This document shows, one piece after another, positions 32,669 to 54,248 of a DNA stretch of 64,000 bases. The stretch spans positions 8,680,001 to 8,744,000 of the forward strand of contig CM119373.1 of NCBI GenBank assembly GCA_051294905.1. The letters are read 5' to 3'. Source of the stretch: Botryllus schlosseri (Eukaryota). Made by a program: the position numbers and the translations under genes. Positions within the stretch are counted from its first letter, which is position 1; the number at the start of each line of letters is the position of its first letter. Under the pieces are notes generated by a model. That model ran no database searches. It saw only the letters and a list, made by a program, of their open reading frames with translations, and was not told where the DNA came from.

Positions 32669-32979
32669 TAGGGGTACCATGTTTATTTTCAGACTTGCAA
32701 AACCGGAATTTTCAAAACCGGAGAAGAATTCGCAAGAACTGGTACATTTTTCCCACTTCGTGGTCGGCTGACTGAAAAAAACGTTTTTCCTTCACGTTAT
32801 CGGGTGGTGAACTTGAAAGGTCAACTTTCCACACTGCTCCTGAAATACCCGCCGGAGCGTCACTTCGTTGCTAATTCATGGCGTCTCGGTCGAATTTTGC
32901 TTTAAATATGACCAAAATTCTCAAAAAAGAGGACAAATCCTCCAGGAAGTAGGTTAAAAGAGGACGTACGGTAACCCTG
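32669..32979. mobile_element. hAT-type MITE
   Basis: TAGGGGTACCATG...GTACGGTAACCCTG imperfect TIRs; homologous to 20500-20833; TSD degenerate. Confidence 0.5.
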
Positions 32980-35589
32980 TATATAGCTGTCATCGGTTCA
33001 TAAATCAGATCCGGTTCACCCCATGCGAGTGGTACACCCTAGGGGCTAGGGTGTACGAAACACCCGGTTGAAAAGCATACCGTAGATAATGTGCGACGAC
33101 GTGGATCATATGACAATGCGCCCATTGCGGTGCCGAAAGTGTGGTATCTGGGGAGGCAAAACCTACATTTTGGAGATCGGGCACTCAGAGTCGAAGGGCA
33201 GACCAAACAAAATATAGTGAAAAAGACCCGGAAAAGCACGGTCGCATCCCTGCCGACGGAGTATTTCTTGTCTCGGCTCGTCTAATTCAATCTATCCGCA
33301 GATGCCGACTCGGAGAAGTTATATATAAGCGAAATATCGCAAATTTCTCTTCCCGATGGGACGGCAAACGCATTGTCCGAATGGAACTGAAAAAATCGTC
33401 AGATATCGGAATTATTTGGATTGGTGACGGGTCCAATAGGTTCTCGGCGAGAAATTCGACTAGTCCGAATATAGTCGTCAGGGTTCGTAAGGTGGCTTCG
33501 GCGATCGTCGGGGCGACTTTTATCCGTCCGGAATGACATACTTGGAAGAAAAGACGATAAAATCGTCGAACTATAAATGTCTGTCTCTGACTCTAATATA
33601 GTTGAGAACAATTCCACAGACGAGGCATGCGGGCCGAGAACGCAATACCGCGTAAAATGCTAATCGCAAGCACGTCAGAAACGAGTGCTGACGTGTCTGG
33701 TAACGTAACGCGGATATATTTTATAACGTCTGGGCGGATATTGTGCGACGTGAAAAAGTGGCGCAGGAGCCCATCAGCTGCGACAGCTAAGGCTTGTCAT
33801 ACCTGACCCGGAAGTTGTTGCGAATCGAGAAATTCGACGACTCGTTTAGAAGCTTCTCACCCATGTGCAGCGAGGCAGGTTATACGTTCAATTCACACAC
33901 ACAGTGCCCTCGAATTTACTATTAGGTTAGTTCGAATTATTTTGCTTCACACGTCAGAAAAAATAACAATTATTCACGATTTTCATTCGCACCACACTGC
34001 AACGTTTATCATTAGCACTAGTGCGAAACCGTCACACAGGTTGAAAAGCACTGATCAAGAGAATGGAACTCGATGAAGAAACGGGCCGCAAACTGCAGTG
34101 CCATGTGACTGGGCGATTATCTAAGGAGTGCACTGTAAATCAGACCAGTGAACTTCACCCGGGTGTATTGAGTACAATAGTTCAGTGCCATAAATTTCAA
34201 AGGTTGCATCGTATCGCACATCGCGTGTCTTGCTCAGGTAATTAATGATAGAACCATGTGTACTATATGTATTTGTGGTATTCATGGTGTTCGTTTCTGT
34301 AACTGCTGTATTATAGCACGGTCCACTTCCAGGCGTTTTAGAAGGCAACGTTTACGCGGATGAGGTGACCTGTAATATGCCACACTCGGTAAGAAATTTG
34401 GCACACTTATTATTTTGTTGTACGGCGATTTTGTTCACCGCATCTTCTCGCGGCACCCCGGAGCTGTCCAATTGGTACACTGGTTGAGAGCCACTGGCAT
34501 ATAGAGTTGGAAATATGCAAGCAAGTACACAATACATAAAGAGATCGAGGATGCGGCACGCGACAGTAGGGACGGTCGGCAGGCCATGGCGTGTACAATG
34601 CTAATGCGGGCTAGTGCAATAGTGCATAATAGCACGCTAGGAAGCCTCTCGTAGGAAGTAATATAGTCGAGGGATCTCAGATGTTTGCACGCTAATATAT
34701 GAACGGGCGGGTGGCCAGAGACGTTCCAGAGAGCGCGTAAGGTAGTATATAAATTAATAACAGATAGAAGACGTAGCCACAGGTATCAACGGCAGGTAAC
34801 ACATTCTTGCAAACTACAATACAGATAAGGATCAAGATTCCGAAGTTCTGGACCAGAAATGAAAACATGTTGGAGGTATATTCATGTTCAGCAAACGAGA
34901 CAATCCGCTTTTACCCGTTAGAAGAACCGAGCTGTCTAGCAAACATGTCCCACCGCCAACACTTCCTGTAAGCGAATGAACGCGAATCAAGGTTTAGAAG
35001 ACTCTCGCAATGAACCGGTGTTTACCCCAATTGTCCGTAATCAACGAAATAACACTCATGACTACTCGTAAACTACTCGTAACTCAGCAGTGGTGCTAAT
35101 TGGCGCATTTGCGAACCAAATTCCGGAATTGTGACTTATTTTCATGTTAGTTGGCACCTGATTTTTCAGTTTGGCGCGTAAGCACTATTTAGGTACTTTC
35201 CACATTCTTCAACTTCAACAGCGCAACGAAACACAAGCTCATTGTCCATTGCTGCGACGCCAGCTGATCACTCACTCTCGCCGTGCAGCCGCCCATTTGC
35301 TCCTAAGCTACGCATGTTCCAGCACTAGTACGACTGAGAACAGAGCAGCGTAACGCTCGACAATGTTGGAAATTTGGTTCTAATAATTGATGTGTCCTTA
35401 ACAGGTTTTGTCTCACATTTGCTATGAAAAGCAGTGGTGCATACGAACAGCTTTGTGATGCTGGTTTGCTGCTGCTACCTAGTAGAAGGACTCTTTTTAA
35501 CTACAGGTTCGTTTTCTACTCATGAAAACTTGGGCCGGCCCGAACCCGGATCCAATTTAATATCTCACTTTTGTTGTAATAGAAGCGTC

Positions 35590-36510
35590 CATAGCTCGTC
35601 ACCCGGATTTCTGGACACCACTATACAAGAGCTAAAGGAGAAATCAAGATCAATGGAGGAGCATGAACGTCTTGTACTATCAATGGATGAGATAAAAGGT
35701 ACTATAAGGTGTGTTAGGTCAATCGATAATGGATATATTTTGTTATCATTGCTTTGTAGCAGTGCTCTGCACCAGACTTTACAGTTAATCTTTTTGCACT
35801 GCTATCCAATGTAATCTTCCACGTGCCTGATTACATCTGATTATTGTATTTTCAGTGAAAGAAAATATATTTTATTCCGCAAGCCTCAACACATAATGGT
35901 AGGATTCGTCGATCTTGGGAGTCAAGACCTGCAAATGATGGCGAAGCAGCTACACACGCTTTTCAACTTTATGTCAGGGGCCTTGTAACGTCATTTTCCA
36001 AGCTCTTGGCATACTACGCTACAAAGTCTGTGACTTCATTTCAACTCTCCTGTATATTTTGGGAATGTGTCGGCATGTTGGAGGATTGTGGATTTCGAGT
36101 AGCTGCATTTGTTGCTGATGGACTAAGTGCGAATCGCAAAATGTTCCAAGAGCTCAATAACATGAATTTGGAGTATACATACAAATGCAGAAATATATTC
36201 AACCCCGGAATATGAAACATTTCTGATTTTTGACCCTCCTGATTTATTGAAAACCGTACGCAACAACCTATACGCCAGTCGCAGTGGTGGTACTAAAATT
36301 ATCGCCAAATATGACAAAGTTATACGTTGGCGGCATTTTACAGCTGTTCCAAAACTGTTTAAAACAACATAATTGAGATGCTGCGAATTGACAGATGCAC
36401 AATTGCACATTTACGTATGCAAAGCTTTGCGAAGATGCGTGGGATTTTTGCTGCTCAGCTTCTGTCTAATAGTGTTGCACGTATCATGAGAGCGCGGGGA
36501 GGTGACGAGC
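35590..36510 (+). pseudogene. P-element/THAP9-like transposase remnant
   Basis: LKEKSRSMEEHERLVLSMDEI, VGFVDLG, FVADGLSANRKMF, FDPPDLLKTVRNN and FAKMRGIFAAQLLSNSVA. Interrupted by a hAT end at 36511. Confidence 0.75.
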
Positions 36511-36700
36511 AGGGTTGTAACCAAGTCACATGGTTCCGAGTCACGAGTCAATCATACTTTTGTGGTTTTGACTCGAGTCGAGTCATTTTCAATTCATCAC
36601 AGACTCGAGTCCGAGTCCAAGTCACCGTTTAAAGGGTCAAGTCCGATTCATGGTGTTATGACTCGAGTCGAGTTCAAGTCACAGTATTGAAGTCATGTTC
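36511..36700. mobile_element. Left part of the GACTCGAGTC hAT MITE family
   Basis: CAGGGTTGTAACCAAGTCAC start; homologous to 12923-13100. Confidence 0.75.
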
Positions 36701-37779
36701 AACTCATGTTTTCAATCCTGCTTGGGTGATATCGAATTCCTTGTTTGCGAAACATGCTCATTTTGTCCCTATCAGAGTCTTGGCACGTGTTTATTTAGGC
36801 AGATAACGGACAGTTCCTGGCCTCATTTACCGATGCTAAAGATAACTTTACTATTCGCAGAACTTAAAATCAAATAACTTTACTATTCGTAGAACTTAAA
36901 ATCAAATATCTTTCTTGTCAGTCTAATACATCACCCATACAAGCATTCACTTTTTATTATGAGCACATCGACGATAGCTCACGAATAGCTGATAGAGAAC
37001 CAACGAATTCACGTGTACATAGTATCTGATAGAGAACCAACAAATTCACGTCAAGATACTAGTTGATAGAGAATCAATAGATGCATGTTTATGTAGAGGT
37101 ATTTACAACAGGCCAGCATGCTGTAATATCGTGCATGCAACTATGTGCATTGTGCAGTGACAACAGAACAGATACCTTTTGATTATACTAAACGTTTTCC
37201 CAATTGCATTACAGACTACATCGCAGTTACAGCATTGGAGAAATAATTGTGGAATGGGGCTGTTCAAAAACATTTTTTCAAATTTTCCGGCTACTTCTTA
37301 AAATTGCTAGATAGCCTAAAAAATCAAATTTGGCTCAATTCCAACCAGTAGAAAGCAATGCTATAAAAGAAAATTTTAGACTAATTACAAATAGAGATTT
37401 TCGAATTTTACCGGCTATCTCATGATATTGTTACATTGTGTAAAAATATGATTCATAGCAAATTTGACTCAATTCCAACTAGAAAAAGTGAAGTTATTAG
37501 AGTAGAATGTTTTGGATATGAAAAAATAGTCGGCTTACTACTGTGTAATTATATTATATGAAAGAATTTCTCACTAAAATACTCCATTTATTTTCAAATC
37601 CAAAATATTCTCCTCTCACATCATTGATTCCACTTTTTTCAAATGAGAGGGTTAACTGCGGTCACCACTTGGTGGGATCGAGAGCTACTGGTCCTTTCAG
37701 TCGCGTTGCAGTCGCGTGTGACTCAATACATCAGCAGTACCCGAGCGACGTTCGCAGTTATTGTATGACTTCCTGTAAT

Positions 37780-39752
37780 GGGTAAAATTGCTGGAAAGAC
37801 TTTACAAGAACTCCGTTAAGAATTGAAAAAACGTGGAGCAAAGACATCTGGCCGGAAAAGTCAACTATTGGAAAGGTAAGTAGGGCGTGTTGCTGCGGTA
37901 TGCGCACCACTATAATTAAGCTGGGTTTTATATAAACAATTGCAAGGCAGTCGGCCATCTGTGTGTCTGTCTCGTAGCAAATTTATGAGCTACTCCATTG
38001 TTGTTACATAGACTCGAAGCTTATGACCGAAACAAAGATTTCCGGGGACCTCAAATTATCTTGCCAGCACCAGACCCTGTGGAGTGGCCAAAAGAAGGAT
38101 TTAGCCAAATATGTGAGGATCACCAGCACTCAGTACCTCCAGTGAATAAGGATTTGATCGACGGATACTTCCGGTACAGAGTAGTTTCAGACAAATCATG
38201 CTGTGCAGATCTCAAAGGCATTGAGAAAGGGGCAAATCTTTTAGAAAGTGAAAGAGTAGTGGTGGCCAGCTTCGTTGAGAACAACCGCAAGTTTTTTGTC
38301 TCGGGCTTGGTGTGCGCAACCATGCGAAGTGATGTTAGTCATTGTGTTGGAATACTAATGAAGGGCCAAGAATACTTGGGTCTGTTTTTTTCAGCTCACC
38401 TATAATGTGAAAGTTGCAACTTCCAGAATAGTGCGTGTGAATGCCCAGCAGGAGCCGGTCTTCACAGTACGTACAAGCATGTTGCAGCCATTCTCTTAAT
38501 GCTTGCATGTTTCAAGGAGTCAGGCGCACTTAAGGTTGCGAACGGCTGTACTGACGCTCTTCAGACTTTGAACAGGCCTCGCAAGTTTCGTTTAGGTAAG
38601 ACAAGGATGATCAAAAACAGGTTTATTATCTAAGATTCAGAGTAGGTTATTTATATATATATATAATTTGATCAAAACTTAATGTAACAATTCTTGGATT
38701 TACAGCTTCCCCGGTTAAATGCCAAGACCTGTTGGTCCAAAAGAACGATGAGGATCCACGACCTTCGAAATTTCAAAACTGGCCTGGCTACAATGATTAT
38801 GTCAGAAATCAAGTCATTGGTTTCTGCTTTTCTTCTGGCAAAGACCTTCCGATGCGGCACATGTACGAAAAAGCAGATTTGTTTGAAGCCACTCATGATC
38901 ATAATTATTTTGGTATTGACTGGAGGCAGTACTGGGTGGACTATTCTTTAAAGGTGGGATGCTTCTTTTCCTAGTAGGCCTAGTGGTAGTTGTTCGTAAC
39001 CATGTACTTCCATTGCACCTCATCATCACTCTGCACCACTGTAGACTGTTTCTTTTTAATGAAATTGTCTATTTTGTTCCCAGATTACAGAAAAAGAAGC
39101 CGAACAGATTCAGTCTGCTACAAGACAACAAAGCCACAGCAGTTAGTGGTTTCGTCACAGAGAATGGCGATTAATAGCAAGTCACTTCGGCACCATTCTC
39201 CATCTAACAGCCCCACGTGATCTCCATTCCCTGTGTAACACCATCCTTAATCCCCAAAAACTCAATGTTCAGCCAATTATTGATGGAAAGACCTATGAGC
39301 CAATAGCGAGGCGGGCATTTGAGGAGATGTGTGTTACTGTAGACTCGTCAGGTCTCTGGATATTGCCATCGTTTCCCAACCTTGGGGCTACTCCAGATGG
39401 GTTAGTAGGGTCTACCCACACCATACAAATAAAATGCCCATACACTGCCCGTGAAAACCATATTGCACCAGGGAAGGGCTTCTCATTCCTCGAGTTCAGG
39501 TCTGATGGGAGAATGGCATTACGTAGGTCGCACCCATACTACTTTCAGGTACAAGGAGGCCTGGCACTAAGCAAGAGGGATGCTTGCTACTTCATTGTGT
39601 ATACCCCCTGTAATGGAAAACCGTGCATATTGATCGAGGAAGTGCAGTATGATGACAAATTTTGGAAGGAGTACCTTTTGCCTAAGCTCAGAGACTTTTA
39701 CTTCAACCACTTTCGGGGATACATTGCTGCAAACGCTGCAGCACTGAATTAA
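37780..39752 (+). pseudogene. ISL2EU-type transposon accessory gene: SAP - SWIM - YqaJ (lambda-exonuclease-like) nuclease, 5 exons, copy 1
   Basis: SAP-like LQELR.ELKKRGAKTSGRKSQLLER. GT-AG introns at 37876-38011, 38334-38394, 38596-38705 and 38954-39083. SWIM CECPAGAG..ST.KHVAA. YqaJ RL.ASHFG, GATPDG and IKCPY. Stops and frameshifts present. Tail-to-tail with a DDE_Tnp_4 transposase. Confidence 0.8.
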
Positions 39753-40173
39753 TGCCAAATTTCATCTACTTCCAATGCTAATTGTTCTTTGTATAAAAGT
39801 TTCTGTAATTATACAGCAAATTCTCAGGCCTCAACTCTAGAAACAGTATGACTATAGTAATTGCGGCAACTTGATCAGAAGTGGGCTGGCATATACAACT
39901 GTAAGGGCTTCTGGGTAATCGGCACAACCCGGAGAGCATAATCATATATAATATAGCCTGGACTTTCTTGCGCGCATTCATACTCCCAAGGAATCAAAAA
40001 TTCATTTTTTTTGCAAGGAGGGTATCAGAATACAGAAGTACACAGTCATACCACAATGGCTCACCTCGGTTAGTCCTGAAAAATTAAAGCAAAATATGTA
40101 ACTATAAGCTACATACCATCAAATGGTAGAAGAAACTTCCGTCATAACAAAACACAGCCTAATATTTATAAAT

Positions 40174-40970
40174 CTATGCGTATTTGTCAACTATACGCCT
40201 ACGGAAGTTCCTTATCATGAAGCACACGAAAATCAGTTTGTGTCCGATGCCAACTTTGTTCCATTGAAGTTCATTCTTTAAAATTTTGTAGGTGTTACTT
40301 AGACCTATGATGCGCTCGATGTGTATCCTTTTCGAGGCAACTCGGCGGTCGTGAATTAATACTTCCTCATCAAATTGGTTTTTGTCCCCAAGCAAATGTG
40401 GAGTTACAAAGACGTCCCGATTTGCAAATAAATCCTGCACCAATAATCCACGATCAGCCATGATGCTGTCCCGTCGCTGGAGCTTGCTTTAATCTGTCAT
40501 TAGCACAGATCTCTCCATAATTTGTCTATCGGTCGTCCTACCACCATAAGTATCGGACACATAAGAGACAAGGCCGTAGGGAGAACAGCCAATGATGGTT
40601 TTCAAGGTGTTGCGGTTCTTATGAGAAGAACATGTGGCTGATTGTGCGTTCACATTAGAGGGCTTTTCAATGGGAACTTCGATCGCATCTAATATTACTC
40701 CCGTAGAAGGAAAATTCTTGCTAAAATCTTGTGGCATGTGTTCTTGCGTCAGCTCATACGATGGCCAGGTGTTCAACTCTTTCAACTGGTGGTACGTGAA
40801 ATTGACCCACATGTTGAACAACTGACCTACTCGAACTTGGCTGATGTTGAATATGAGTGAAAGTTCAAAGTCGTCTTTTGCCTGGCGAAGTTTCATGTGA
40901 GTGAGATAGAGTTGCTCTTGGGGAGACAGACGGCTGCATTGAATTTTTAAGTAATGGGCAGCTGCAGCAG
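40174..40970 (-). pseudogene. ISL2EU-type (DDE_Tnp_4/HTH_Tnp_4) transposase, N-terminally truncated, copy 1
   Basis: LSPQEQLYLTHMKLRQ, VILDAIEVPIEKP, KNRNTLK, MADRG and HIERIIG. One nonsense change at about 40490. Confidence 0.85.
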
Positions 40971-43965
40971 TGCTTGCCAGTTCGGGCACATCTAAGCCGC
41001 CTTTCTTCGCGGACGTATGAAAGAACGGTATCGCCGTGTCTTTCGGTAGGTGCAACCACTTCCTAATTTTAGCCCGTATTTTCAAATCGAACACCTTTAG
41101 TAGGCTTGGCTTTACGTTTCCCAACGTTCCCCCGTAGATTAGTCTGGGGATTAGGTGTTTCCTGAGCAGAAACATCTTTTGCTAAGGTTTCAACGGGGAC
41201 TCAGTTATTTCTTTTTAAGTCCTCTTTCCAATATATGCCCAATCGATGACAGAGCGCCACCTCTTGATGACACACGACGAAATCTCAGTGTAGAAAGAGT
41301 GTGAACTTCATCTCTGGACTGCCTGTCAATGTTGCACGGACTTGACACAACAGCCTGTGGACGCGAGGAGTCATTCGCATCAATACTGCTCCCTTTGGAA
41401 GAGCCTTGGACTTCTTGGACTGGACTTGCAGTGCCCAGATACTTGAAGGTTTCATTGATATGAAATCTTGCTCGTCCACTCCGAAGGTGGTATCCAAGTC
41501 GACAAAGGTTCGCCGACGTTTGCCGTCTACTCTGAAGGTGAGCGATCTGCACTTTAGTGCGTTAGCATTCAAACCTGATTCTTTGAGGCTCGAAAGTAGC
41601 GTCGTCAACTGCCTCTCCATGCCTTCTGGGGTTTCGGTTTATAAGGCTATATCGTCCGCCAAACCCAGTGCGGATATCGTTTTTCCATTGATTCTCGGGC
41701 CCATAACGGCCAGCTCGCAGAAAGCTTCATCGAGTACTGCGTTGAATAGAATCGGTGACATTGGGTCACCTTGTCGGACTCCTCCCGAAACGGTGATATT
41801 ACACCCGTAGAGATTGGTAGTTGCCTCTTGATAGCAACTTTCGATGTATCTTGTGATGGGCTCAGGAGTCCCCAATCTTTTCGCCGCTCTCAGTATGCTT
41901 TCATGTTTTACGGAATCGAAAGCTTTTTTGAGGTCAAGGAAGACCACACATAGTCCTTGATTCCTTTTCCTCGCTTGCGCGATCACAGCGTCAAGCATAG
42001 TAATATTTTCCCCACAGCCATCTGTCGGCATGAAGGCACGCTGGATATTGTTCAGCTTGAAGCTGTCGCTTAATCGCTGTGCCATTATTTTATGAAATGT
42101 CCTTACCAGAATAGAGCCAATCGTTATTGGCCGGTATTGCCCCGGCTTCCTTGGGTTGATGACTTTTGGAATCAGCACCGTTCTTGCCTGTTGTAGGTGC
42201 TTAGGCAGACAACCGCCAAGGAGCCAAAGGCTAAAAAGTTTGATTAGGCAGGTAGTTCTTAACCGCTTAACTGCCGCCAACTTGATTCCATCCGGCCCAG
42301 TTGCCGAAGGTCTTGAGGAGGTCAGCGCTCCTTCGATTTCCTCTTTGGAGATAGCTTGCAATAGTTCCCAATCCATAGGACGTTCATTCGCAATTGTCCT
42401 TTTATCGGAGCCCTTCTCGGTTTGCAATATGCTGCTCCAGAATTTGATAATGTCTTTGTGAGATGGTTCTCGATCAATTCTTCTGATTCTCCACCCACCA
42501 TTGATAACTAGCCCAGCGCAGGCTGTTCTGTCCTTTTTGTACAGTTCTTGTAACTTAGCGTATTGTTCCCTTTTCAATTTCTTAGTCGTCGACCGCCCCG
42601 TTTGGGCATGTTGATGCTGAGGTCGCGCCTTCCACTTCCGGATAGGGCAACTTCGGCCCAGTCTCTTTGCGAAACTTTTCGCGTGCGTTTCCAGTGCCGC
42701 AATGAGTTCATCCCCGGTAATTCGTTCAGTAATTAGCCGGTCAGATAGGCTTCGTCTCCAATGTCCTTCTCCGATGATAACGTTGTAGGTTCGAGTTTTT
42801 CCAATTCGCATCTTAGCTTTATACACCAATTCAGTGCGTTGATGTATCTTGGTTCGTTTTCTGGCCTTGGAGATCCAGTTTCTTTCTTTTGCCGGCTCCG
42901 GGTGGACCGTCTAGGCCGCTGCATGCCTCTTAACCGACTTACCATTTCGGTGTATCTTGCCTTCTTTCTCTCGCATTTGATTGAGTCCAGCGATCTTCTG
43001 CCGCCTTTAAATGCCCTATGCAAGTCCTCGCTTGTCACTGCTCCCTGTTCATTTTCGAGGGATATTTCGGTCATAGCCAGGGCCTATTCTTCCTCTGGCT
43101 GCTATCGCCGCTTCCTTTTAGCAGATTTCGCCGTGGCCTCGGCGTGCAATATGACCGGATGCTGGGTTTTCTTATGTAACCCCAGTCCGGTTGCTGTAGT
43201 GAACATTCTGTCACAATGACTGCACGCATGAACAGAAGATCCCAATCGAGATGGTAATCGCGTGAGTTTGATTCTGGCTGCTTGCCAACCATGAGGAATG
43301 TGTCTCGGTAGCATTTCACAATCAAAGCAGATGAGTATTTTAACATATGCCGTATACTATATCTGCAAAAAGGAAGTCCGTGTTATATTCGTTCCGATTC
43401 CTTCATTTGGTTTCCCTTAAGCGGGATACTTGTCCGAGGGGTGTATCTATGTCCCTCATCGTGGGCTCAGCCTCACGACCCGCTGCCCCTTAAGCGGGAT
43501 AAGTCCACCTTGCTTGTCTGTCCTTATCGCCATCATTTCCGGTCCCATTTGTCCAAGATGCCCCCGGCTTCACACGCTTCACATTGTACACAATATTGTC
43601 CTTTGTTGCGTTATATGACCTGACATGGCTTGCTCAGGGCCACTGTCGCGACGACCATTGCTGGCCGTCATATTGAATCTCGTTAACTTTTCGAGGGGTG
43701 TATCAAGTCCTCGACTTGCTCAATCTCACGACGCGCTGTCCCTTAAGCGGGATAGGTCCACATTGCTTGTCTGAACGTCTCACGACCCGCTGCCCCTTAA
43801 GCGGGATCAGCCCACATTGCTTGTCTGTTCGCTTGCCCAGCATTCTCAGTCCCATTTCCGAGATGCCCCTGGCTTCACACACATCACCTTGTACGCAATA
43901 TCGCCCTTGCTCGCTACGTGGTCTATTGCCTCACATAGCCTTGTATCTCTATCTGAGTAGACCGT
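40970..43965 (-). mobile_element. R2 non-LTR retrotransposon family A, copy 1 (5'UTR part, ZF-Myb-RT; 3' end lost)
   Basis: C2H2 CSHCDRMFTTATGLGLHKKTQH; Myb-like KRRxQPEEE...RSLDSIKC; RT motifs YRPITI, QRAF, LDLKKAFDSV, GVRQGDPMSP, LGLADD and FKYLG; thumb GGLDVP. Frameshifted. Confidence 0.88.
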
Positions 43966-43973
43966 CAGACCGT

Positions 43974-46900
43974 CAATCCCTCGAACCTTAGGCTGACCAA
44001 GCCTCGTGAGCACCTTCGACACGAACCGACCATGCCCTAGTGCACTCACCAAAGGTTCGATGGAGTCCTTCATCCGGGTAAGACGCGCTCTCTGCAAGAG
44101 GACTAGTCGAGACGCCAGGGAGGGCACTCCGAGACCACCATCCGTAACGTCGGCATGAATGAAGGCCACCGTCGTGTCCTTCGGAAGATGGAGCCATTTT
44201 CTCACATACCCTCGTACTCCAATGTCATATGTCGCCAGCATCCCGTGCGTGAGCCTCCCTGTGGAGCCACCGTAGATCAACTTGGGAATCTGATGGTTGC
44301 GTAACAAGTATAGCCTCTGTTGGGGCTTCAGGGGAGCCTCGTATAGCTCGCGCAGACCCCGGCGGAGAGTATCCCCCAGTGGTGCCCGGCAACCACCCGC
44401 GCCCACCTCCAGCCCCAGGGAACGGTAGCCTTCGTCCGCACCCAATGAAGGGACCGGCGCTCCAGAAATCCGCAACGCAGCTGCCACACCTACACAACTC
44501 CGCTTTCGCTTACCGTCTGCACGGATAAGCAAGGACCTGCATTTGGCCGCGTTTGCTTCCAGGCCGGTCGGGGCAAGGGCGTCGAAGAATCGCTTCAACT
44601 GCGCAAACATACCCAGCTCGGTCTCAGTCACTAGCGCGACGTCATCAGCGAACCCCAAAGCACTGACCAGGTGACCCTCGACGGTCGGACCAATAGGCTC
44701 TAGACTACACAAGGCCTCGTCGATCACCGCGTTGAACAACACCGGCGATAGGGGGTCGCCCTGCCGAACACCTCGCTTGACGACAATGCGCTCCCCGTAC
44801 AGGTCGGTCGCTGCCCCCTCATAGCAGCTGCTTATGCACTCCACGAGGGGCTCCGGAACTCCCATTCGTCTGACCGCCCTTAGAATGCTGTCGTGCTTGA
44901 CGGAATCGAACGCCTTCTTCAGGTCGAGAAAGACAACACACAGGTTGGACCCCTTGGTCTTGGCTTGAGTGATCGTCGCATCGAGCAGCGTCACATTTTC
45001 CGCGCAGCCGTCAGTAGGAAGAAAAGCCCGCTGCATGGGATTAAGCTTAAAGCTCATGCTGAGACGCTTAGCCAACAACTTGTGGAACACCCGAACTAGC
45101 ACCGGACCAATGGTAATCGGCCGGTACTCGCCAGGCGACTTTATCCTATTGACTTTTGGAACCAACACGGTTCGGGCTGAGCGGAGCGGCAAAGGCAGGG
45201 CACGGTTCAGGATCCAAAGGTTGAATAGCTTGACCAGGTAGTTCACGGATAGTTTCTTGACGCATCCGAGTGTCATCCCATCCGGGCCTGCTGCCGAAGG
45301 GCGAGAGGCTCGCAAAGCATAGGTCACCTCCTCTGCTGTCACCCGGGATAACAGATCCCAGTCGACGGGCCCTTTCGGGGTCGCCTGTCTATCATCCGCT
45401 CCAGCCTCGACACTCATTATCCTGCGCCAGAAAGCGATCATCTCTGACCAGGACGGTTGCCCAAGGGCCCCCGAACTCCGCCAACTACCCCCCAGGACTA
45501 AGCTCGCGCACGACTTCCTAGACTTGGCGTACAAGCGTTGTACCACCGCGTACCTATCCCTTCGTAGGGATCGCTCCGATCGGAATCCCCCTCACGGGGG
45601 TTTCACAACAGTCCAGGAGTTCGATGGGGTGCTGATCCCGAGGCGATCTACCAGACCACCAGCGTGCGCCGTTAGTGCTTCCGCCAGGGCCGCCCCCAAG
45701 GAGCGTTCAGCAATTAACTGATCCAGGAAGCCTTCCTCTCCAGGGTCCACGGAATCCAAGGGATCCCGAGGCTCCAGCGGGGATAGGGTCTGCTCTGTTC
45801 TAAGTTGAGAGCCCTCTCAAAGATTTTGTAGTCAATCTTCCTGCCAGAAGATTTGAGGTGCAGCTCCGCACCGCCCAGAACTCGCTCCTCTTCCAGGCAC
45901 CACTGCCGCCTTTTGGTCGCGATTTTCGCAATCGCTTCCGCCGCAAACGCCACCGAGTGACTCCGTTTGCGGTGTTGCCCTCTGCCTTGGGGCGAACTGA
46001 ATGGACCGGACCGGTCACAGGTCCCACACGGGAATCTATTCCGAGATCCACCCCCTGGGGTACAGCTCCCTGGAGTCTCATCGGCCATCGCTAACTTCTT
46101 GATACTTGCTGTACTTCTTCTTCGCTGAACTTCGCTTTCTCGTCTTTGAATAGTCTCACAGTCACAGATACAACTAGCTAGAGCACTGCAAAGGAGAGAA
46201 TACTCGGTTAGTATCCGGCGTCAGGAGACGATCAGCAGGGACAGCCATCAACCCCTAGTGGTCTGCACCGTTGGAACCAGGGACCCACCCCTTGCGGACC
46301 TTTCGCAGTGAGTGGTCCCTCCGGAACCAGGTCGGCCCTTAGGGGCAGATAGGTTGGGGGAGGTCTCAGGAGTTTGCGCACTGGGCCGTCCCTCCTTCGA
46401 CTAAAGGGCGTTCCAGGTAGAACCCTCCTTTCTGCAACAGTTAACCGGTGTTTAGCCGGAACCCAAGCCGAGTGGCAGGGACTACTAGGCAGAGGAACTA
46501 CCCAAATTTAAGCAACAGTTTGCTAAGGGGGGCTTTTCAGGGCCCTACCTTCGGGTCCTAACGCTGGGTGTTAGAGGACAGACCTAGAGACGTTTGGTCT
46601 GGCCCAAAGACGAGGCTAGTGACCGAGATGCAGGCGTCCTTATGGAGTGCACGTACGTTAACACATAACCAAGGGTAGGCGACCATCACCAAAAGCCGAC
46701 CTGCCAGTTATCTCTTCAAGCCACACCGCCGCTATTCTCGTTCACTGAACGTCCACACTCGGACCACTATAAGCTTTCTTGCCTTGGGGGGTCTTCTATC
46801 CGATGTACCTCATGGCGTTTGACTGGTGTAGGGTCACTATCAGCCAAGTCCCGCCGTCAGCAGTACACCGGGTAAGCTCGCCCTTCCTAGGGCGCCGGAC

Positions 46901-47069
46901 CTTTGGGGAGGCCGGCATAATCACGAGGCAATTTATGCGTTTTGTGGAGCTATAGCAGCCTCCGGCTTGTCCCTTGTCCGTTTCGCCCGTTCTATGTTCC
47001 GCCTATTGGAGGGTCCGTTACTCGCAGCGAGCATGGAACCCCAGGGTCCGGCTTACGCAGGTCTCCAAC
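43974..47069 (-). mobile_element. R2 family B, copy 1: 5' end at the 28S target through RT/thumb; endonuclease deleted
   Basis: 5' junction directly after 28S ...TAACTATGACACTCTTA. About 980-nt 5'UTR. ZF CGTCDRSGPFSSPQGRGQHRKRSH plus Myb KRRQWCLEEE. 566-aa RT ORF (43846-45546) with QGDPLSP and LGFADD. Confidence 0.92.
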
Positions 47070-47551
47070 TAAGAGTGTCATAGTTACTCCTGCCGTTTAC
47101 CCGCGCTTGGTTGAATTTCTTCACTACCCGCGCTTGGTTGAATTTCTTCACTATGACATTCAGAACACTGGGCAGAAATCACGTAGCGTCAACACCGGGT
47201 TGCGACCGTCGCTACGCTTTGTTTTTATTAAACAGTCCGATTCCCCGGGTCCGTACCAGTTCTAAGTCGGCCGCTCGACGCCGGCCGAGGCGGGTCTCGC
47301 GACCCGCGCAGGTCAGACACCTGCGTTACTCTTTTACAGATGTACCGCCCCAGTCAAACTCCCCGCCTGACACTGTCTTCAGAGCGGATTGCCCGCGGCT
47401 CCGAGGCCGCGGGCTTGAGACCAAAATCGTACGCCGGCTTCGCGCCGGCTCGGTCCGTCTCACTGAATAAGCGAAAAAACCACCAGAGTAGTGGTATTTC
47501 ACCGGCGGCACCTCCCACTTATCCTACGCCTCTCGTGTCTCTTCACAAAGT

Positions 47552-47592
<41 letters not shown>

Positions 47593-47640
47593 ATTCCGCC
47601 AAGTCCGTTCCCTTGGCTGTGGTTTCGCCAGATAGCAGAC

Positions 47641-47672
<32 letters not shown>

Positions 47673-47675
47673 CCA

Positions 47676-47707
<32 letters not shown>
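47070..47707 (-). rRNA. 28S rRNA fragments flanking the R2 target site, permuted (pseudogenic)
   Basis: TAGCCAAATGCCTCGTCATCTAATTAG...GAGTTTGACTGGGGCGGTACA...AACGCAGGTGTC (downstream of the target) is joined to ...GACTTAGAACTGG...GGGTAAACGGCAGGAGTAACTATGAC (upstream of the target). A 27-bp tandem duplication lies at 47098-47151. Confidence 0.95.
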
Positions 47708-48716
47708 TTTCGAACATTTATTGCCGTTATATAAACCTAGTGCAGATAGTCACAGTGCTGCGCTAGTTGGGTCGCAGGCCCCCCTGTCACACACTCTAGT
47801 CCTACCGCTCGTAGGCCTACCGCTTTTTAGGCCTAAAATAGGCCTATCGCGACGCGCAAAATAATGTTTTCACTTTTTAGGCACCGTTGGGCCGGGTTCA
47901 AGTTTAACCAGTCTCTTCGTTGCACCTTCAGGTCCGTCGGCACCGTCTTTCAGATGCGTCATCGTTAACGTCTTCTTCCTCTTCGGCTTCGCGACCGTTA
48001 GGGTTAGCATCGAACGGCCGACTTAGAACTGGTACGGACCCGGGGAATCGGACTGTTTAATAAAAACAAAGCGTAGCGACGGTCGCAACCCGGTGTTGAC
48101 GCTACGTGATTTCTGCCCAGTGCTCTGAATGTCATAGTGAAGAAATTCAACCAAGCGCGGGTAAACAGCGGCGGACACGGCCTGCAATTCATACGTTGCT
48201 GCATGCACTTTTGCGATCAGCTCTTCGGCGCTTTTGATAGACCATGCGCCACGCCAGTTCAAGACGATTCCAATCGCCTCTGCACTCTTTACTGTCGCAC
48301 GAGTGGTCACCCACTCTAGGACTTCTTCACCACCGTATTTGGCTTTCTTCGCTTCGAATTCGCAGTTGAGGTCTGCGTTGTCGGCAACTATAGTTACATC
48401 AGCAACTATAGCGGAGTCCGTGTTCTTATCAATAAGGACTAGATCCGGTTTCAGGAGACCTTTGTCGGTCTTGATCTTAGGTTCCCACCAGATCTCTTTA
48501 CCTTCTTCTTCTGCAATTCTCACCACATGCCGTGCAACCTTGTTTTGCCGGCGGGTCCTTTCAGCATGTGTCCGGGGGGCATAATTGCAAAATATGCCCC
48601 AACGCCCCGAATCTTCCGCAGGCTTCACACGCTGTGTTCTTTTCAGGTCTCCATCTCGCCGTTCTTGCGGGCGTCGTCATCAGGTTTCCTCGGATCTTAA
48701 TAGCGCCGATGTAATT
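47708..48716 (-). mobile_element. R2 3' fragment (family C; could be the missing 3' end of family A): CCHC + restriction-like endonuclease + 3'UTR
   Basis: AIKIRGNL, CEACGRFGALGHILQLC, R(Q)NKV, EP...KPDLV...DVTIV...K..KY and NWRGAW. The 3' end AATAAATGTTCGAAA joins precisely to 28S TAGCC, the canonical R2 site. Confidence 0.92.
48015..48170 (+). rRNA. Inverted 28S rRNA fragment (upstream-of-target segment) embedded in R2-C
   Basis: CGGCCGACTTAGAACTGG...GAAGAAATTCAACCAAGCGCGGGTAAAC in sense orientation on +, nearly identical to the reverse complement of 47098-47276. Confidence 0.93.
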
Positions 48717-49460
48717 ACGCCCGTTGAGAGTATTCTGGTATATCCAGCACGCCCGTTGAGAGTATTCTGGTATATCCAGCTATAGAAATGGCAAGAAAAC
48801 ATGGATTGAGGATTCTTACATTTCCGCCGCATTGCAGCCACAGATTACAGCCTCTTGATATAGGAGTGTATGGGCCATTTAAAAAATACTATTCATCAAT
48901 TTGTGACTACTGGATGTCAACTAATCCCGGTAAGAGCCTGAAGATATATATGATGCTGCTGGGCTCTCAGGACAGGCATTTGTAAAATCATTCACAATGG
49001 ACAACATTAATTATTCCTTCAAGTCAAGTGATATACACCCCTACAATCCATGCATATTTGGTGATGACTCATTTCTGCCTGCAAGTGTTACAGACAGGCC
49101 CCTGCAAGTGTTACAGACAGGCCCATTTCCACAGACTATGGCATAGAATCCGGGACGGGTATCGAGCCGATATCGATACGCCAAGAAAATGTCGAAGTAG
49201 CAAGTCCGTTGACTCTGAATTCACTGGTAAACTTGGATCATGGTGAATCGGACGAACCCTCATCTTCATTCAGCTTTGGCAGCCCAATCTATGCATCAAG
49301 TCCAGCATGCTCCGATTTGAGTCAAATATCATCTGACATAAGTACAGCGCTACAGCATGTTTCACCCTATCCCAAGACTAATACCGTGAGGAGGCCTTCA
49401 AATAGGAAAAGGCGCAAATCTGCTGTCATAACCGATACTCCCGAGACAGATATCTTAGAG

Positions 49461-50927
49461 CAGGGGTGGGCAACATACGGCCCGCGAAGGGATTTTGTCC
49501 GGCCCGCGGACAGTTTTCCGTCTTACATGATGGTGTGGCCCGCGGCCCAAGTCATCATCCAAGATTCCCCACTACTTGCTTACATACGTCAAATGTTAGT
49601 GACTGTATGTCATTATACGCATGTATGCGCACTAGGGTTGTTCAAAAAAAACTTTTTTTTCCAAATCTCACTCGCCTAGTGACTAAATCGTCAGGTTGTC
49701 CAAGAAAACGATGCACACCAAATTTGACTCAATTCCAACCAGTAAAGGCCGTGCAATCTTGAATTGAAATTTTTAATTTCATAATAAAAATTTAAAAAAA
49801 AAATCTCATATTTTTCTGTCAACCCCGTGAAATTGTGAGCAGTCTTCAAAGACGATGCAAACCAAATTTGAGTCAATTCCGACTTGTAGAAGCGGAGTTA
49901 TTCGAGTTTTTCGTTGATAATTCTCGGATTATCAACGAAAAACTCAAATAGTTCTGCTTCTACTAGTCGGAATTGACTCAAATTTGAATTACATCGTCTT
50001 TGAAGACAGCTCAACAATTTCATGGGGTTGGAAGCAAAATTTGAGATTTTTTTTTAAAATTCATAATAATAAATTAAAAATTTCAATTCAAGATTGCACG
50101 GCCTTTACTGGTTGGAATTGAGTAAAATTTGGTGTGCATCGTTTTCTTGGACAACCTGACGATTTAGTCATTAGGCGAGTGAGATTTGGAAAAAAAGTTT
50201 TTTTTGAACAACCCTAATGCGCACTAGCGCGGCGAGCGAGGGTGGAGCTTATGCGTAAATCCGTCGAAGCGAGAAGACTTGTTGAATTATCAGCATTTAC
50301 GATGTACTCAGGCCTAATGTCATTTGTGGTAATCATGATGGTGTTCGTCGACTAAAATGGTCATTTACACTAGGCCGATATTTCTTATTTTTGATTCCGT
50401 AACCGTCGACTTGTAGCACGGCACACTTCAAGGCTTCTGTAAGACACCGCTTATGCCAGGAGTCGCCTACTAAAAATGGGTCGGGGGCCACTTTTAAATT
50501 TCGTGGAAGCCGCGGGCCGCAAGAATTCACTATCGAGGTAATATAGGCCACATAGCTGAACAGTGAACAACCACGCTATCTAAAGACTATAAGGACTTGA
50601 TATCTTGGTAAACTTGGGGCATCAGGCTTATCGAACGCCTTGAAATCTTAATTAGGAATTGCACCGAGTGTTGATTGATCAGAGAGAAGCAGATATAGTG
50701 GTGCATGTATGACAATGCTGTTCTTAAATCCACATTGTCTTCGACATTATTGGCGAGAAATGGCTTTGAAGTTACATTGCTGTCGTTAAATTACATTCAA
50801 TAAATACGATTTATTCCTTTTATATGTGGATAAATGGGCGAATAATGTATCGATTCAGCAATCCGGCCCGCCAAGGTCCTAATTTTCCTATATCCGGCCC
50901 GTCGACTGGAGAAGTTGCCCGCCCCTG
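49461..50927. mobile_element. Charlie-like hAT non-autonomous element
   Basis: TIR CAGGGG(T/C)GGGCAAC and perfect 8-bp TSD tcttagag (49453-49460, 50928-50935). Confidence 0.92.
49633..50216. mobile_element. Almost fully palindromic 584-bp hAT-type MITE
   Basis: TAGGGTTGTTCAAAAAAAAC... arms of about 290 bp meet at about 49925. Perfect 8-bp TSD atgcgcac. A related sequence occurs at about 37255-37480. Confidence 0.92.
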
Positions 50928-53110
50928 TCTTAGAGAGAAGTCAAAATCCCAAAGCTCAACCTAAACGTCGCAAATTTATGCTTCCTGTCTCGTGTGACAA
51001 GCTGCGCACTAAGACACAGTCGTAGCTCAGTCTAAACAAAAATAATCAACACTTTCCGCCTTATGTGACAGGCCGAGCAGAAAAAAAACTGCCAACCGTA
51101 ACTCAGTCGAAACAAAGAAAATCAATCCTTCATGGCGAACCTGGCAAAAAAAAAATCAATCCTTCATGGCGAACCTGGCAAAACAAAAGGAACCAAACAA
51201 GCAGTCGACGGGGACGTTGTTATTGTCAAAGTCTTTTCTGAAGTTGAAGGCCACAAAAATTTTCTTGAAAAAATCACATGGGGCCCAGATGTTGATGGAG
51301 ATTTTGAAGTCAGCTTCATGAGGCGATCTCGTACTATCAAGGATGCGTTCCTGTTCCCAGATGAACCCGATGAGGCATCCATATCTGAGATGGATGTAAT
51401 TTTGGTCCTGCCATCTCCAACCCTATTTGATAAAAGCAAACGGTTATGCAGTGTTTACAAATTTAGCATAAATCTTGCACGCTATGGAATATAGCGCGGT
51501 AGAGCTGGAAAGAGGAAGAAGCACTCTTGCTTCCAAACAAACTTTGAATTCAGAACTTGTTGACCTTGTTAGCCAACATCATTTCGTTGTTCAAGTTCTA
51601 TTTTCATTTTGGTAAAGCGTTCCTAAGCATACTGTAAGCTTCTCATGCAGCCTTGTTTGTTCATTCATTCTTTTGTCGAACAAAAGAAATCGACATGCAG
51701 TTCTTTCCATTTTTAAAAAATTCGGCAGCATAATACTATGCTAAATTATACTTTGAGAAAAGAGTATTGGCAAATACAATCAAGAAGCTAGTAAATGTAA
51801 GCGACTGCAGTGCTCTGTAGGCCTAAACGCTTCATATTATGGGAACAGAAATATGAAGAAAAAAAATTGTTCCATCGGTCATATGTATGTGACCGGATAC
51901 ACATTTGACCAGCCAACTTTGAACGCTTCTTGATATTCATTGATATATCAGAGTTACTCGCGGTATGGTGGATTGAGTAGCACTAGGGCCCGAGTGTTGG
52001 AAAAACAAAAGATCGTAAGACCAGTGGAAAACTGCTTGGATGTAGAGCACCAAGTCTGTTTTTTGATCCATAGGTACCACATCTCCCCTACAACAGACCT
52101 ATAAAAATTGGGTGTTCTCTGGTATCTGCACTGATAAGATTCATATTTTTAAATAATGCAGCAGTCGCATATACGTTTCCTAAATCGAATGTCTTATCAA
52201 ATCCGACACTACCTTGCCCGTTAAGCATTGATTTTTGATATCCAAAATTTGTTCGTTGCTATGCAAAATTTATGTTTAGAGGATTGTCATGAGAATGAAT
52301 GATTTTTTTTACGAAATTGGACGTATGTGCCATATCAATGACTTGAAGCATATCGTCGGCAAACCCTCCCTTGGCCGGAATCTTGATATCATGCGGCTGA
52401 TGTCCATCGTTTTTCCTGTATTTCGTTTGGTGTATTTGGTGGTGGTTTCGTGGCATGTTGGTGATGTCTGACGCTTCTGTTTGTAAATTGGTGCAAAGTC
52501 TTTTGGCGGGAACGTAGAAGCATGTGGCGGGAACGTATGAGAATTTCTTTCTTATTTCATCCATAACCGCTGGTCGTAGAGTCATGATATATAGCTCAAA
52601 ATCTGCGGAAGCATCATGTTTCTATCTGTTATCAGAAGAAAGTTTTCTCTATTGTGAACACAAAATGAGTTCGCACATTTTCTTGAAATTCAGCATTTGT
52701 TCTGACGAATTGTGATCTGTCATCAGTTTTTTTGAAACTGAAAGTAACACACCGACAATACCGAATATTGGGCATATTCACAAGTCTTTTTAAAATCGGT
52801 TCAAAATATCATAATCACATTTAACGGCTTATTGAAAATGCATTTTTGTGTCCTATAGCCTACCTATTGAACACAGGCGATCATCAATTCATCAACCTCG
52901 CACCTTCAACCAACTTATTCGAGCGATATCCAAAATAATACACAAATGCTAACTTTGCATATGAATTCTTTGACTATAATCTGAAATTTATTTTTGGTAC
53001 ACGGCCGTAGTCTATAGAAAGTATTCGAAAGGCGACATCATTCTGGAATGCTTTTTGATTTGTCATGAATCAACTATTGAGATTAGTGATAACTTTTAAT
53101 ATATTATAAT

Positions 53111-54100
53111 TAGAGCCCGACCGATTATCGGCTAGCCGATAATATCGAGTCAATATCACACTTGGAAAGAAATATTGGTATCGGCCTTTCTGGGTAAAAA
53201 TATCGGCCATTTTCGTGACGTCACAACATGGTCGTAGGGAGTCAGAGAGACGCGAAGTCTTCACTGAATGTCCGTAAATTATAAAGATAAATGGCCAAGC
53301 TGCAATGCACGCAGGCCAGTAGCCCAATGTGAAAAATATACTTTCACCGAAATCCCCTTGCGGTGGTCGAACACCAGAGACAGAGAGCATACATCGAGTG
53401 AATGGAAAGTTGTATGCTGAAGATTTCAGTCGATTCATTTGAGAAATGAGAACTTCATTCGTGCTGGACTGACCGTCGAGATGACAGAGAAAAGGGTCGC
53501 GTGTAAACAGTTACCTGTAGATAGTGCTGTTGGTGTCTGTGTAGGAAGCTCATTAGCCAAGGCTCGGTATCAACAAAGTGAAAAATACCAGTAACGTATG
53601 GAGTCATCTGACTGAAGGGCCGGGCCATCATGAGAAGAAATATTCGGGCACAGAGTGCAAGAAATCAAGCAAAAAGGGAATAGAGCCAACAATTCATACG
53701 AACATTTTTGATTCCATAATGACATGGGCCAACTCTGACAAAAGTGTGTAAAAGATCGATCAACTGATTGTTGAAATGCTGGTCATAGTCAAGGGGATGG
53801 GTGGAGCGGACGTGAACAATTTGAGTTTTTGCATATCCTCTTCAGCTGTTAATGATATTCTGAAGGCTCCAGGTGCACTGCAAGAAGAATATCAATATTT
53901 GTTGGACCCAATGAAGAAGAAATACCCTGCAGTCGTGGAACCAAAATAAAAAAAGATTCCCAGTTCTTGCTGTTCTACCAACTACGGCACCAATACTGTT
54001 CACTGTATTTAGTACTGTGAAGCCTACTTCATTTATGAATACCACACAATTTCACTCCCTGAAGAAACCGCCGAGAAATGATGCTTCGTGAACTGTAAAT
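53111..54100 (+). mobile_element. 5' part of a hAT element with BED-finger transposase remnant
   Basis: TAGAGCCCGACCGAT terminus; degenerate LIS.G...KNTSNVWSHL...H and W...D...KIDQLIVEML, ZBED-like. Confidence 0.5.
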
Positions 54101-54248
54101 CTGCAACTGCTAGACCGGTGCTACTGATATATTTTTATTGCCCCCCAGATCATTCATTTCATGTGAAGTATAACCATGGCTGTAAACATGTTCAATTAAA
54201 TACTCTCGAGGTGTTGAATCTATTGGAAAGGTTCGAGGTGTTGAATCT

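Follow-up and report, generated by a model that had tools for sequence, protein, structure and literature searches.

R2 elements are expressed as co-transcripts of 28S rRNA and normally work inside the rDNA. In members of the R2 clade with a single N-terminal zinc finger, such as R2Bm of Bombyx (8gh6), the protein is built of a C2H2 finger, a Myb-like part, the reverse transcriptase (RT), the thumb, a CCHC motif and the restriction-like endonuclease (RLE), in this order; the 3' end abuts TAGCC of the 28S without poly(A), and the 5' end is located at this 28S site too. Incomplete R2 copies outside the rDNA are known from other animals, in particular from Drosophila, where they are diverged, lie outside functional 28S and represent dead ends of the element, and where an R1/R2 fusion also forms an extra-rDNA tandem array (Stage and Eickbush 2009, PMC2718515). 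Tandem arrays of R1 itself, in which rDNA-specific LINEs follow each other head to tail with a short 28S spacer, are found inside the rDNA and arise by re-insertion into a 14-bp target-site duplication, which R2 does not produce (PMC2718515, PMC3414825). Duplications of the upstream 28S (13-28 nt, up to 113 nt) that abut the 5' junction have been described for R2 (Eickbush et al. 2013, PMC3774820). Decayed rRNA-derived DNA off the array is also known in the form of rDNA orphons and rRNA pseudogene fragments.

Here we describe pieces of three R2 elements, A, B and C, in a window of 64,000 nucleotides of the Botryllus schlosseri genome (contig CM119373.1, positions 8,680,001 to 8,744,000). They resemble R2Bm in the order of their domains and in the structure of their ends; however, unlike a typical R2, all three are broken, truncated and located outside the rDNA. 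The locus shares with the Drosophila extra-rDNA copies the incomplete and diverged state of its elements, but here three lineages are strung together, two of them linked by a permuted scrap of 28S. It also recalls the R1 arrays in its head-to-tail order and 28S spacer, except that the spacer is 638 bp long and permuted. Unlike in rDNA orphons, what is left of the 28S corresponds exactly to the two flanks of the R2 site, and both flanks remain joined to an R2 end. A 27-bp tandem duplication near the full-length 5' junction is similar to the published duplications of upstream 28S, but it ends about 30 nt before the junction.

Organization of the locus

The following features, given in coordinates of the window, make up the locus and its flanks:

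40174-40970 (-): left flank, N-terminally truncated fragment of a PIF/Harbinger-ISL2EU-type transposase with HTH_Tnp_4 and DDE_Tnp_4 (Pfam)
40971-43346 (-): remains of the R2-A ORF (PDB match to R2Bm; Pfam RVT_1 and zf-C2H2; ORF translations; tblastn 42760-40969)
43347-43959 (-): retained part of the R2-A 5'UTR, with internal 54-bp and ~132-bp repeats (TRF, self-BLAST)
43960-43973 (-): filler at a deletion junction, an 8-nt local duplication (comparison of copies 1 and 2 of the duplicated block)
43974-46088 (-): remains of the R2-B ORF (PDB matches to R2Bm and R2Tg; Pfam RVT_1; tblastn 45843-43906)
46089-47068 (-): R2-B 5'UTR, 980 nt (sequence reading, ORF list)
47070-47306 (-): upstream part of the 28S, from about -237 to -1/-3 with respect to the R2 site (sequence reading, TRF, Rfam)
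47307-47707 (-): downstream part of the 28S, from +1 to about +400 with respect to the R2 site (Rfam alignment)
47708-48006 (-): R2 3'UTR, assigned to C (sequence reading)
48007-48169 (+): inverted copy of upstream 28S, covering about -190 to -25 with respect to the R2 site (self-BLAST; Rfam model 2200-2254)
48175-48780 (-): 5'-truncated endonuclease part of R2-C with a CCHC motif and a PD..D..K core (ORF translations, tblastn, TRF, RLE tree)
48788-48985 (+): right flank, fragment of a pogo-type DDE_1 transposase (Pfam, E=2e-05)

On the minus strand the locus thus reads from the endonuclease part and 3'UTR of R2-C through 638 bp of 28S into R2-B, starting from its 5' end, and on into R2-A. This is the head-to-tail order C, 28S, B, A of the first-pass annotation, in which several R2 lineages had been placed outside an rDNA unit and two R2/28S junctions had been recognised as exact, and we confirm it in both respects. 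By reading of the sequence, only two junctions are canonical, 47707/47708 at the 3' end of C and 47069/47070 at the 5' end of B. As claimed before, C ends exactly at TAGCC and B starts at the upstream half-site. The end of C has no poly(A), the 28S in front of B breaks off 1-3 nt before the canonical nick, and the full R2 copy L002 has the same junctions. For both C and B, which belong to different lineages, these junctions prove an entry into the canonical 28S site. They had accordingly been called genuine insertions, which holds for their entry into 28S; the junctions do not show that the target was an orphan mini-28S, as had further been proposed, rather than a normal rDNA unit.

The remaining junctions, at all of five sites, set one truncated piece against another: C is joined in mid-ORF to DDE_1, the C ORF to the inverted 28S, position +400 of the 28S to -237, the middle of the B RLE to nt ~60 of the A 5'UTR, and the A thumb to the transposase fragment. 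There is no complete R2 copy at the locus, and the ORF translations of A, B and C are broken in 3 of 3 cases. The features of the R2 clade occur piecewise: A and B have the zinc finger and RT, C and a second copy of B the CCHC motif together with the PD..D..K core. All three pieces have tandem duplications at or near their 5' edge (TRF). The truncated transposase genes on both sides (the HTH_Tnp_4/DDE_Tnp_4 match spans 40174-41175 on the minus strand) agree with the earlier description of the flanks as DNA-transposon debris.

R2-C has one frameshift near 48570, and its 5' edge is formed by a 32-bp x2 tandem duplication (48717-48780, TRF), which is itself C coding sequence. Homology to R2 proteins covers 48776-48164 (tblastn), and the element therefore reaches about 48780 instead of ending at 48716, where the feature had previously been closed. 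Truncation of C by a plain transposon insertion can be rejected, as tblastn reveals no further R2 coding sequence past the DDE_1 fragment. The last ~25 codons of the C ORF are replaced by the 163-bp inverted 28S copy, a feature absent from the first-pass annotation, which is 98% identical to 47125-47281, 850 bp away, in reverse orientation (self-BLAST). Twin priming can be rejected as the origin of this patch, because, given how the RLE and the patch are oriented, it would demand one more inversion.

The 28S block between C and B (47070-47707) has the reported length of 638 bp; however, it is not one colinear segment, but a permuted one, with 401 bp of downstream sequence joined directly to 237 bp of upstream sequence. 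The downstream piece has 7-8 mismatches at upper-case Rfam consensus positions in its first ~165 nt, and, judged against the conserved positions of the Rfam model, the scrap looks decayed. The 27-bp duplication of the upstream piece (x2.1, TRF) lies at 47098-47153. Rfam matches to eukaryotic LSU rRNA are confined to 47.1-48.2 kb, with no other rRNA piece at E<=1 in 30000-47060 or 48200-64000. No SSU or 5.8S match was obtained, and the 28S amounts to 638 plus 163 bp only, so that a functional rDNA unit is absent; the earlier statement that 18S, 5.8S and further 28S are missing is borne out for 30-64 kb (Rfam). It had also been suggested that mini-targets were regenerated and reused at this locus. 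This we do not find: between 30 and 64 kb there is a single permuted scrap, its downstream-to-upstream join does not recreate the TTAAGG/TAGCC site, and no intact, empty or re-formed R2 target exists.

R2-B appears to have a full-length 5'UTR, to judge by its 28S junction, followed by one C2H2 finger and a Myb-like part (46088-45714), a frameshift, and the RT and thumb (45546-43974); the RT ORF (45546-43846) matches Bombyx R2 8gh6 at E=8e-82. R2-A comprises one C2H2 finger, the RT up to the ADD motif and the thumb, with several frameshifts, and its RT ORF (42829-41639) matches 8gh6 at E=6e-51. It is 3'-truncated in the thumb, runs in frame into the transposase fragment and retains no 28S junction. 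A single C2H2 motif is seen in A (Pfam zf-C2H2) and in B, in agreement with the R2-D type, which has one finger ahead of the Myb motif, with the frameshifted upstream frames covered by the search in part. A 70-nt block of the 5'UTR is conserved between A and B and is compatible with a ribozyme, which in the R2 clade is HDV-like, self-cleaving and placed at the 5' end; the minimum free energy fold of 47068-46850, computed without pseudoknots, is no better than those of shuffled sequences (z=-0.44), and Rfam reports no ribozyme match in 46089-47060.

The duplicated block and the R2 lineages

Part of the locus is present twice in the window, as a block of 7-8 kb that takes in A and the 3' half of B:

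37865-44705 (strand not assigned): copy 1, with its partner at 54247-62216 (self-BLAST, windowed identity)
57779-60868 (-): second copy of the A 5'UTR and of what remains of the A ORF, 99.3-99.7% identical to copy 1 (self-BLAST, tblastn)
60869-61031 (-): 60-bp x2.7 units homologous to nt 61-132 of the B 5'UTR (TRF, BLAST)
61036-62216 (-): copy 2 of B, which starts in mid-RT, continues across the thumb and breaks off halfway into the RLE, with the CCHC and PD motifs of the endonuclease (ORF 62229-60904, tblastn)

The copies lie 16 kb apart; they are about 95% identical in the transposon part, 99.5% identical across A and about 97.5% identical across the part of B. Copy 2 of B is 97% identical to 43974-44705 (self-BLAST). 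Copy 1 lost the 3' part of B through a 721-bp deletion, at whose junction the filler is found, and a second deletion of 22 bp with TAC microhomology adjoins the filler. Copy 1 of B is thus left without an endonuclease, and the sole B endonuclease of the window is the one in copy 2. The 566-aa B ORF has no exact match on record in public contigs. The homology of the 60-bp units to the B 5'UTR (78-82% identity, E=9e-10), already remarked upon in the first-pass annotation for 60870-61035, leads us to regard them as the beginning of the A 5'UTR, slightly shortened at its 5' end and deleted in copy 1. The B/A junction deletion proposed there is plausible, as A begins ~60 nt inside a B-like 5'UTR and B stops in mid-endonuclease.

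With 57% amino acid and about 65% nucleotide identity between their RTs, which confirms the difference noted before, A and B are sister R2 lineages. C is probably a third one. Its endonuclease is about 32-45% identical in amino acid sequence to that of B (taken from the duplicate at 62229-60904), in line with the earlier claim that the two differ, and it groups with P0017 (SH-aLRT 97); the AU test does not reject a grouping of B, C and P0001 (p=0.28). Hence the C/B pair is not a duplicated single insertion, and tandem duplication of one occupied target can be set aside. The suggestion that C could be the missing 3' end of A is unlikely on tree distances (C-B 2.2 and C-P0017 1.45 for the RLE; A-B 0.96 and A-P0017 2.97 for the RT; RLE/RT distance ratio 0.9). 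However, the GC content of C (0.51) is nearer to that of A (0.48) than to that of B (0.585). The best outside relative in the RT is P0001 (44-47% identity), and the UTRs have no nucleotide similarity to the nearest full R2 copies, L001 and L002.

Origin of the composite

The locus is most likely a collapsed leftover of R2-occupied rDNA rather than a working trap. In the fuller form of this reading, to which we assign a probability of about one half, it is a dead composite relic without present function, i.e. an R2-occupied rDNA fragment that was collapsed by deletions and repair patches and then partly duplicated. C, B and A would have resided in neighbouring units of the rDNA array, or of an rDNA fragment that had left the array; when one rDNA houses several R2 lineages, adjacent units are expected to carry a mixture of them (PMC3581529). 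The DNA between them would have collapsed through non-homologous deletions. One of these may have begun at about +400 in one 28S and ended at about -237 in the following one, so that the permuted scrap was left; a second may have taken the 3' end of B together with its 28S and the initial ~60 nt of A. The outer ends of the composite would have been broken against DNA-transposon fragments, and a templated inverted repair patch would have taken over the end of the C ORF. Later, the block of A plus half of B with its transposon flank would have been duplicated, after which copy 1 would have suffered its microhomology/filler deletion and the A part may have been homogenised between the copies. This scenario is suggested by the presence of only two canonical junctions among joins between truncated pieces, by the DNA-level deletion with filler and microhomology visible between the copies, by the nearby source and high identity of the inverted patch, as templated repair would give, by the broken ORFs and the 7-8 changes at conserved 28S positions, and by the lack of other rRNA within 34 kb. 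On the other hand, two separate deletions must each have removed the whole remainder of an rDNA unit (many kb) and yet have left the R2 bodies in place, IGS, ETS, ITS and 18S have left no trace that can be recognised at the locus, and the tandem duplications at the 5' edges of all three pieces are not predicted by random deletion.

These duplications count in favour of a rival origin, a chimeric cDNA made in one aberrant retrotransposition, in which the R2 RT would have started on A RNA at a non-rDNA break, jumped to a 3'-shortened B RNA, copied it through an uncleaved 237-nt upstream 28S leader, and jumped again, to a read-through C transcript with its end 400 nt into the downstream 28S, to stop inside C. 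The three R2 pieces and both 28S pieces indeed share one orientation. Followed from 3' to 5', every piece continues to a 5' end or close to one, after which the next piece sets in with an arbitrary 3' end; the 28S pieces match exactly the flanks that co-transcripts should carry, and the location outside the rDNA would be explained without large deletions. End-to-end template jumping is established in vitro for the R2 RT (Bibillo and Eickbush 2004) and chimeric retrocopies are known from LINE RTs (Buzdin 2003), both as cited in PMC3414825. Nonetheless, we consider this origin unlikely: it requires three jumps and an integration away from the target site, and DNA-level events are needed all the same for the inverted 28S patch and the 721-bp deletion. 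Moreover, A has no 3'UTR, which the R2 protein normally needs to start TPRT, and we know of no natural RNA ends at +400 or -237.

Ranking below it in our estimate is the model of the first-pass annotation, an ectopic tandem array of 638-bp mini-28S units (-237 to +400) hit independently by different R2 lineages and thereby acting as a trap or graveyard. The scrap corresponds to a single down-to-up boundary between units of such an array, the different lineages of C and B speak for independent insertions, and the B/A junction would then need just a ~1.6-kb deletion; but the boundary is the only one, neither an empty unit nor another copy of the junction occurs in 64 kb, target regeneration has left no trace in the sequence, normal R2 activity lies inside the rDNA, and ordinary rDNA insertions followed by deletion yield the same picture. 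That a remnant of such an array repeatedly captured R2 lineages as a natural decoy target, possibly feeding small-RNA defence, is more doubtful still. An assembly artefact, in the form of a collapsed or mis-joined rDNA edge and/or a second block that is a falsely duplicated haplotype, seems highly improbable. Repeats and rDNA are error-prone in assemblies, and the two blocks are 95-99.7% alike at a short distance; however, the window has zero assembly gaps, the junction sequences are complex and specific, unlike simple repeat collapses, the blocks differ by several indels and in their outer flanks, and four runs from one sample contain 66-71% of the sampled words, a run from another study 35%.

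Fate of R2-occupied 28S outside the rDNA

As it stands, the locus is an ordinary decaying relic. It documents at least three R2 lineages in one genome, the third (C) being probable, and shows the fate and decay of R2-occupied 28S DNA outside the rDNA. If serial template jumping in vivo or ectopic mini-targets proved true, the locus would constitute a natural record of the side-reactions of R2 integration, which are now relevant to R2-based tools for gene insertion.

Structure of the composite R2 locus

The region contains three broken R2 elements (R2-A, R2-B and R2-C), with the R2 sense on the minus strand of the window. Sequence reading and translation gave the order along that strand already proposed in the first-pass annotation, namely the end of R2-C, a 28S segment, R2-B and R2-A, so that this map proved essentially right and the feature is real. 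Its parts, in R2 sense, are the following.

Components of the composite locus
48788-48985, strand opposite to R2: truncated pogo-type DDE_1 fragment adjoining R2-C
48780->48175, minus: R2-C ORF, endonuclease part only
48169->48007, inverted: 28S piece, 163 bp
48006->47708, minus: 3'UTR, 299 nt, stopping exactly at TAGCC
47707->47307, minus: 28S downstream of the R2 site, 401 bp
47306->47070, minus: 28S upstream of the R2 site, 237 bp, fused directly to the downstream 401 bp
from the R2-B 5' end, minus: R2-B 5'UTR, 980 nt
46088-45714, minus: R2-B zinc-finger/Myb ORF, separated by a frameshift from the next
45546-43846, minus: R2-B RT-thumb ORF
down to 40971, minus: R2-A, internally repetitive 5'UTR followed by zinc finger, RT and thumb

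The ORFs of all three elements are interrupted. On translation, the C piece shows a CCHC motif, a PD..D..K core and one frameshift (its coding homology extends to about 48776 according to tblastn), and the coding part of A contains several frameshifts. At 40971 the A frame stays open across the join to an HTH_Tnp_4/DDE_Tnp_4 transposase whose N-terminal part is missing; a 228-aa open frame (40489-41175, minus strand, copied near 57300-58000) joins about 68 residues of the A thumb to this fragment, and looks like a chance in-frame fusion of two truncated elements.

Only two junctions are canonical for R2: that of the C 3'UTR with TAGCC, and that of the upstream 28S, which stops 1-3 nt before the nick, with the 5' end of B. 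Both types are also present in L002, a Logan contig of 3454 bp that contains a complete R2 copy together with its two 28S junctions. The two canonical junctions of the locus show that both C and B had inserted normally into a 28S target. All other junctions bring one truncated piece against another: the DDE_1 fragment against the middle of the C ORF, the C ORF (lacking about 25 codons) against the inverted 28S, 28S +400 against 28S -237, the middle of the B endonuclease against the A 5'UTR (visible in the second copy of the duplicated block, see below), and the A thumb against the transposase fragment. Since the downstream +400 end meets the upstream -237 end, the 638-bp "28S" is a permuted join without a re-formed target site.

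Each R2 piece also has a tandem duplication at or near its 5' edge: a 32-bp unit is present twice at the edge of C, a 27-bp unit 2.1 times in the upstream 28S, and a 60-bp unit 2.7 times where A begins. Duplications of upstream 28S are known at R2 5' junctions (PMC3774820); however, the published ones abut the junction, whereas the 27-bp repeat ends about 30 nt ahead of B. These duplications may be a coincidence or a by-product of 5'-junction formation.

In the Rfam search, eukaryotic LSU rRNA in the window was confined to 47.1-48.2 kb, and 18S, 5.8S and additional 28S gave no match at E<=1 in 30000-47060 or 48200-64000. The downstream 28S piece is probably a pseudogene, because its first ~165 nt depart from the Rfam consensus at 7-8 strongly conserved positions. 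The inverted patch and its source, 850 bp apart, share 98% identity, and the 27-bp duplication of the source is missing from the patch. CpG depletion was observed nowhere.

Elsewhere in the window, a U6 snRNA match (23997-24067, plus strand; 48.4 bits against the Rfam gathering score of 44) is likely a shortened pseudogene or retrocopy, because it covers only 71 nt of the 105-nt model. Diverged tandem arrays occupy 19533-20482 (units about 70% identical) and 30232-30685 (~175-bp unit, 94-98% identity), and a palindrome of ~600 bp, 87% self-complementary, lies at 16167-16771.

Relationships of the three elements

The RT ORFs of B and A match the solved R2 protein (R2Bm, 8gh6) with E=8e-82 and E=6e-51, respectively, in both cases far better than LINE-1. 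A and B share 57% identity in the RT and 50% in the thumb, and in an RT tree that included 55 near-full-length R2 proteins retrieved by a word search they are sisters (SH-aLRT 98), followed by the outside R2 protein P0001 (95). C overlaps neither A nor the first copy of B, but it does overlap the B endonuclease kept in the duplicate (ORF 62229-60904), with 45% identity in the CCHC part and only 32% beyond it. For the endonuclease, the tree joins C with P0017 (97), which is encoded by L002 and is the closest relative of C in this domain. Path lengths in the tree of the restriction-like endonuclease (RLE) are 2.2 for C-B and 1.45 for C-P0017, those in the RT tree 0.96 for A-B and 2.97 for A-P0017, and the RLE/RT distance ratio is in general 0.9. 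These path lengths argue for C as a third lineage and against C as the 3' end that A lacks, with the caveats that a B+C+P0001 clade is not rejected by the AU test (p=0.28) and that the GC content of C (0.51) is nearer to that of A (0.48) than of B (0.585). Several R2 lineages within one genome are already known, including in an ascidian (PMC3581529).

The duplicated block

The block 37865-44705 (copy 1) recurs at 54247-62216 (copy 2), which begins abruptly within the middle of the B RT. Copy 2 retains 721 bp that are gone from copy 1, comprising the remaining B linker, half of the B endonuclease and 2.7 of the 60-bp units. The homology of these units to the B 5'UTR, suggested in the first-pass annotation, was borne out (nt 61-132, 78-82% identity, E=9e-10), so that A lacks about the first 60 nt of a 5'UTR that is homologous to the one of B. 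At the deletion junction in copy 1 there are an 8-nt local duplication and another deletion of 22 bp with 3-nt microhomology, scars which show directly that error-prone repair acted on the DNA of this locus. The copies are about 95% identical in the transposon part (38031-40480), 99.3-99.7% in A (40781-43780) and 96.7-98.7% in B (43781-44686), and this stepwise pattern suggests that, after an older duplication, a recent conversion tract formed over R2-A.

Beside the outer edge of copy 2 (62217-62290) there are GC-rich motifs of the CGCGGACCGG / CGCGGGCC type, which are also found at 49500-49570, beside a near-perfect 600-bp palindrome (49626-50223, 91% self-complementary). Such motifs may be the ends of one transposon family. 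The palindrome, probably a foldback or MITE-like element, gives sub-threshold matches to unrelated plant miRNA hairpin families.

Origin of the locus

We regard a collapsed rDNA fragment as the most economical origin, with a probability of about 0.5. According to this scenario, R2 elements of different lineages would have inserted normally, either in adjacent rDNA units or in a piece of rDNA detached from the array, and non-homologous deletions would have taken out the DNA separating them; a templated inverted patch, breakage against DNA transposons, the segmental duplication and one more deletion would have followed. Its weak points are that two large deletions must both have spared the R2 bodies, and that no trace of spacer or 18S is left. 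The shared orientation of the pieces, the co-transcript-like 28S flanks and the site outside rDNA would also be accounted for by a chimeric cDNA made through serial template jumps of the R2 RT, an activity known in vitro (Bibillo and Eickbush 2004, cited in PMC3414825); however, this route would take three jumps as well as initiation off target with no 3'UTR, and we consider this origin unlikely.

Slightly less probable is the array of ectopic miniature targets envisaged in the first-pass annotation, of which there is no positive trace: a trap with regenerated targets is not demonstrated by a single permuted scrap, with neither an empty nor a repeated unit. An assembly artefact is improbable. 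Words of the locus occur in raw data, with shares of 0.66-0.71 (four runs, all of one sample) and 0.35 (a run of another study), values that show presence of the sequence rather than contiguity. In Drosophila, R2 copies that are incomplete and lie outside rDNA have been described (PMC2718515), and tandemly arrayed rDNA-specific elements separated by short 28S spacers have been documented as well (PMC2718515, PMC3414825). The locus of B. schlosseri is best filed as a further case of this known kind of relic, and not as a demonstrated R2 trap.
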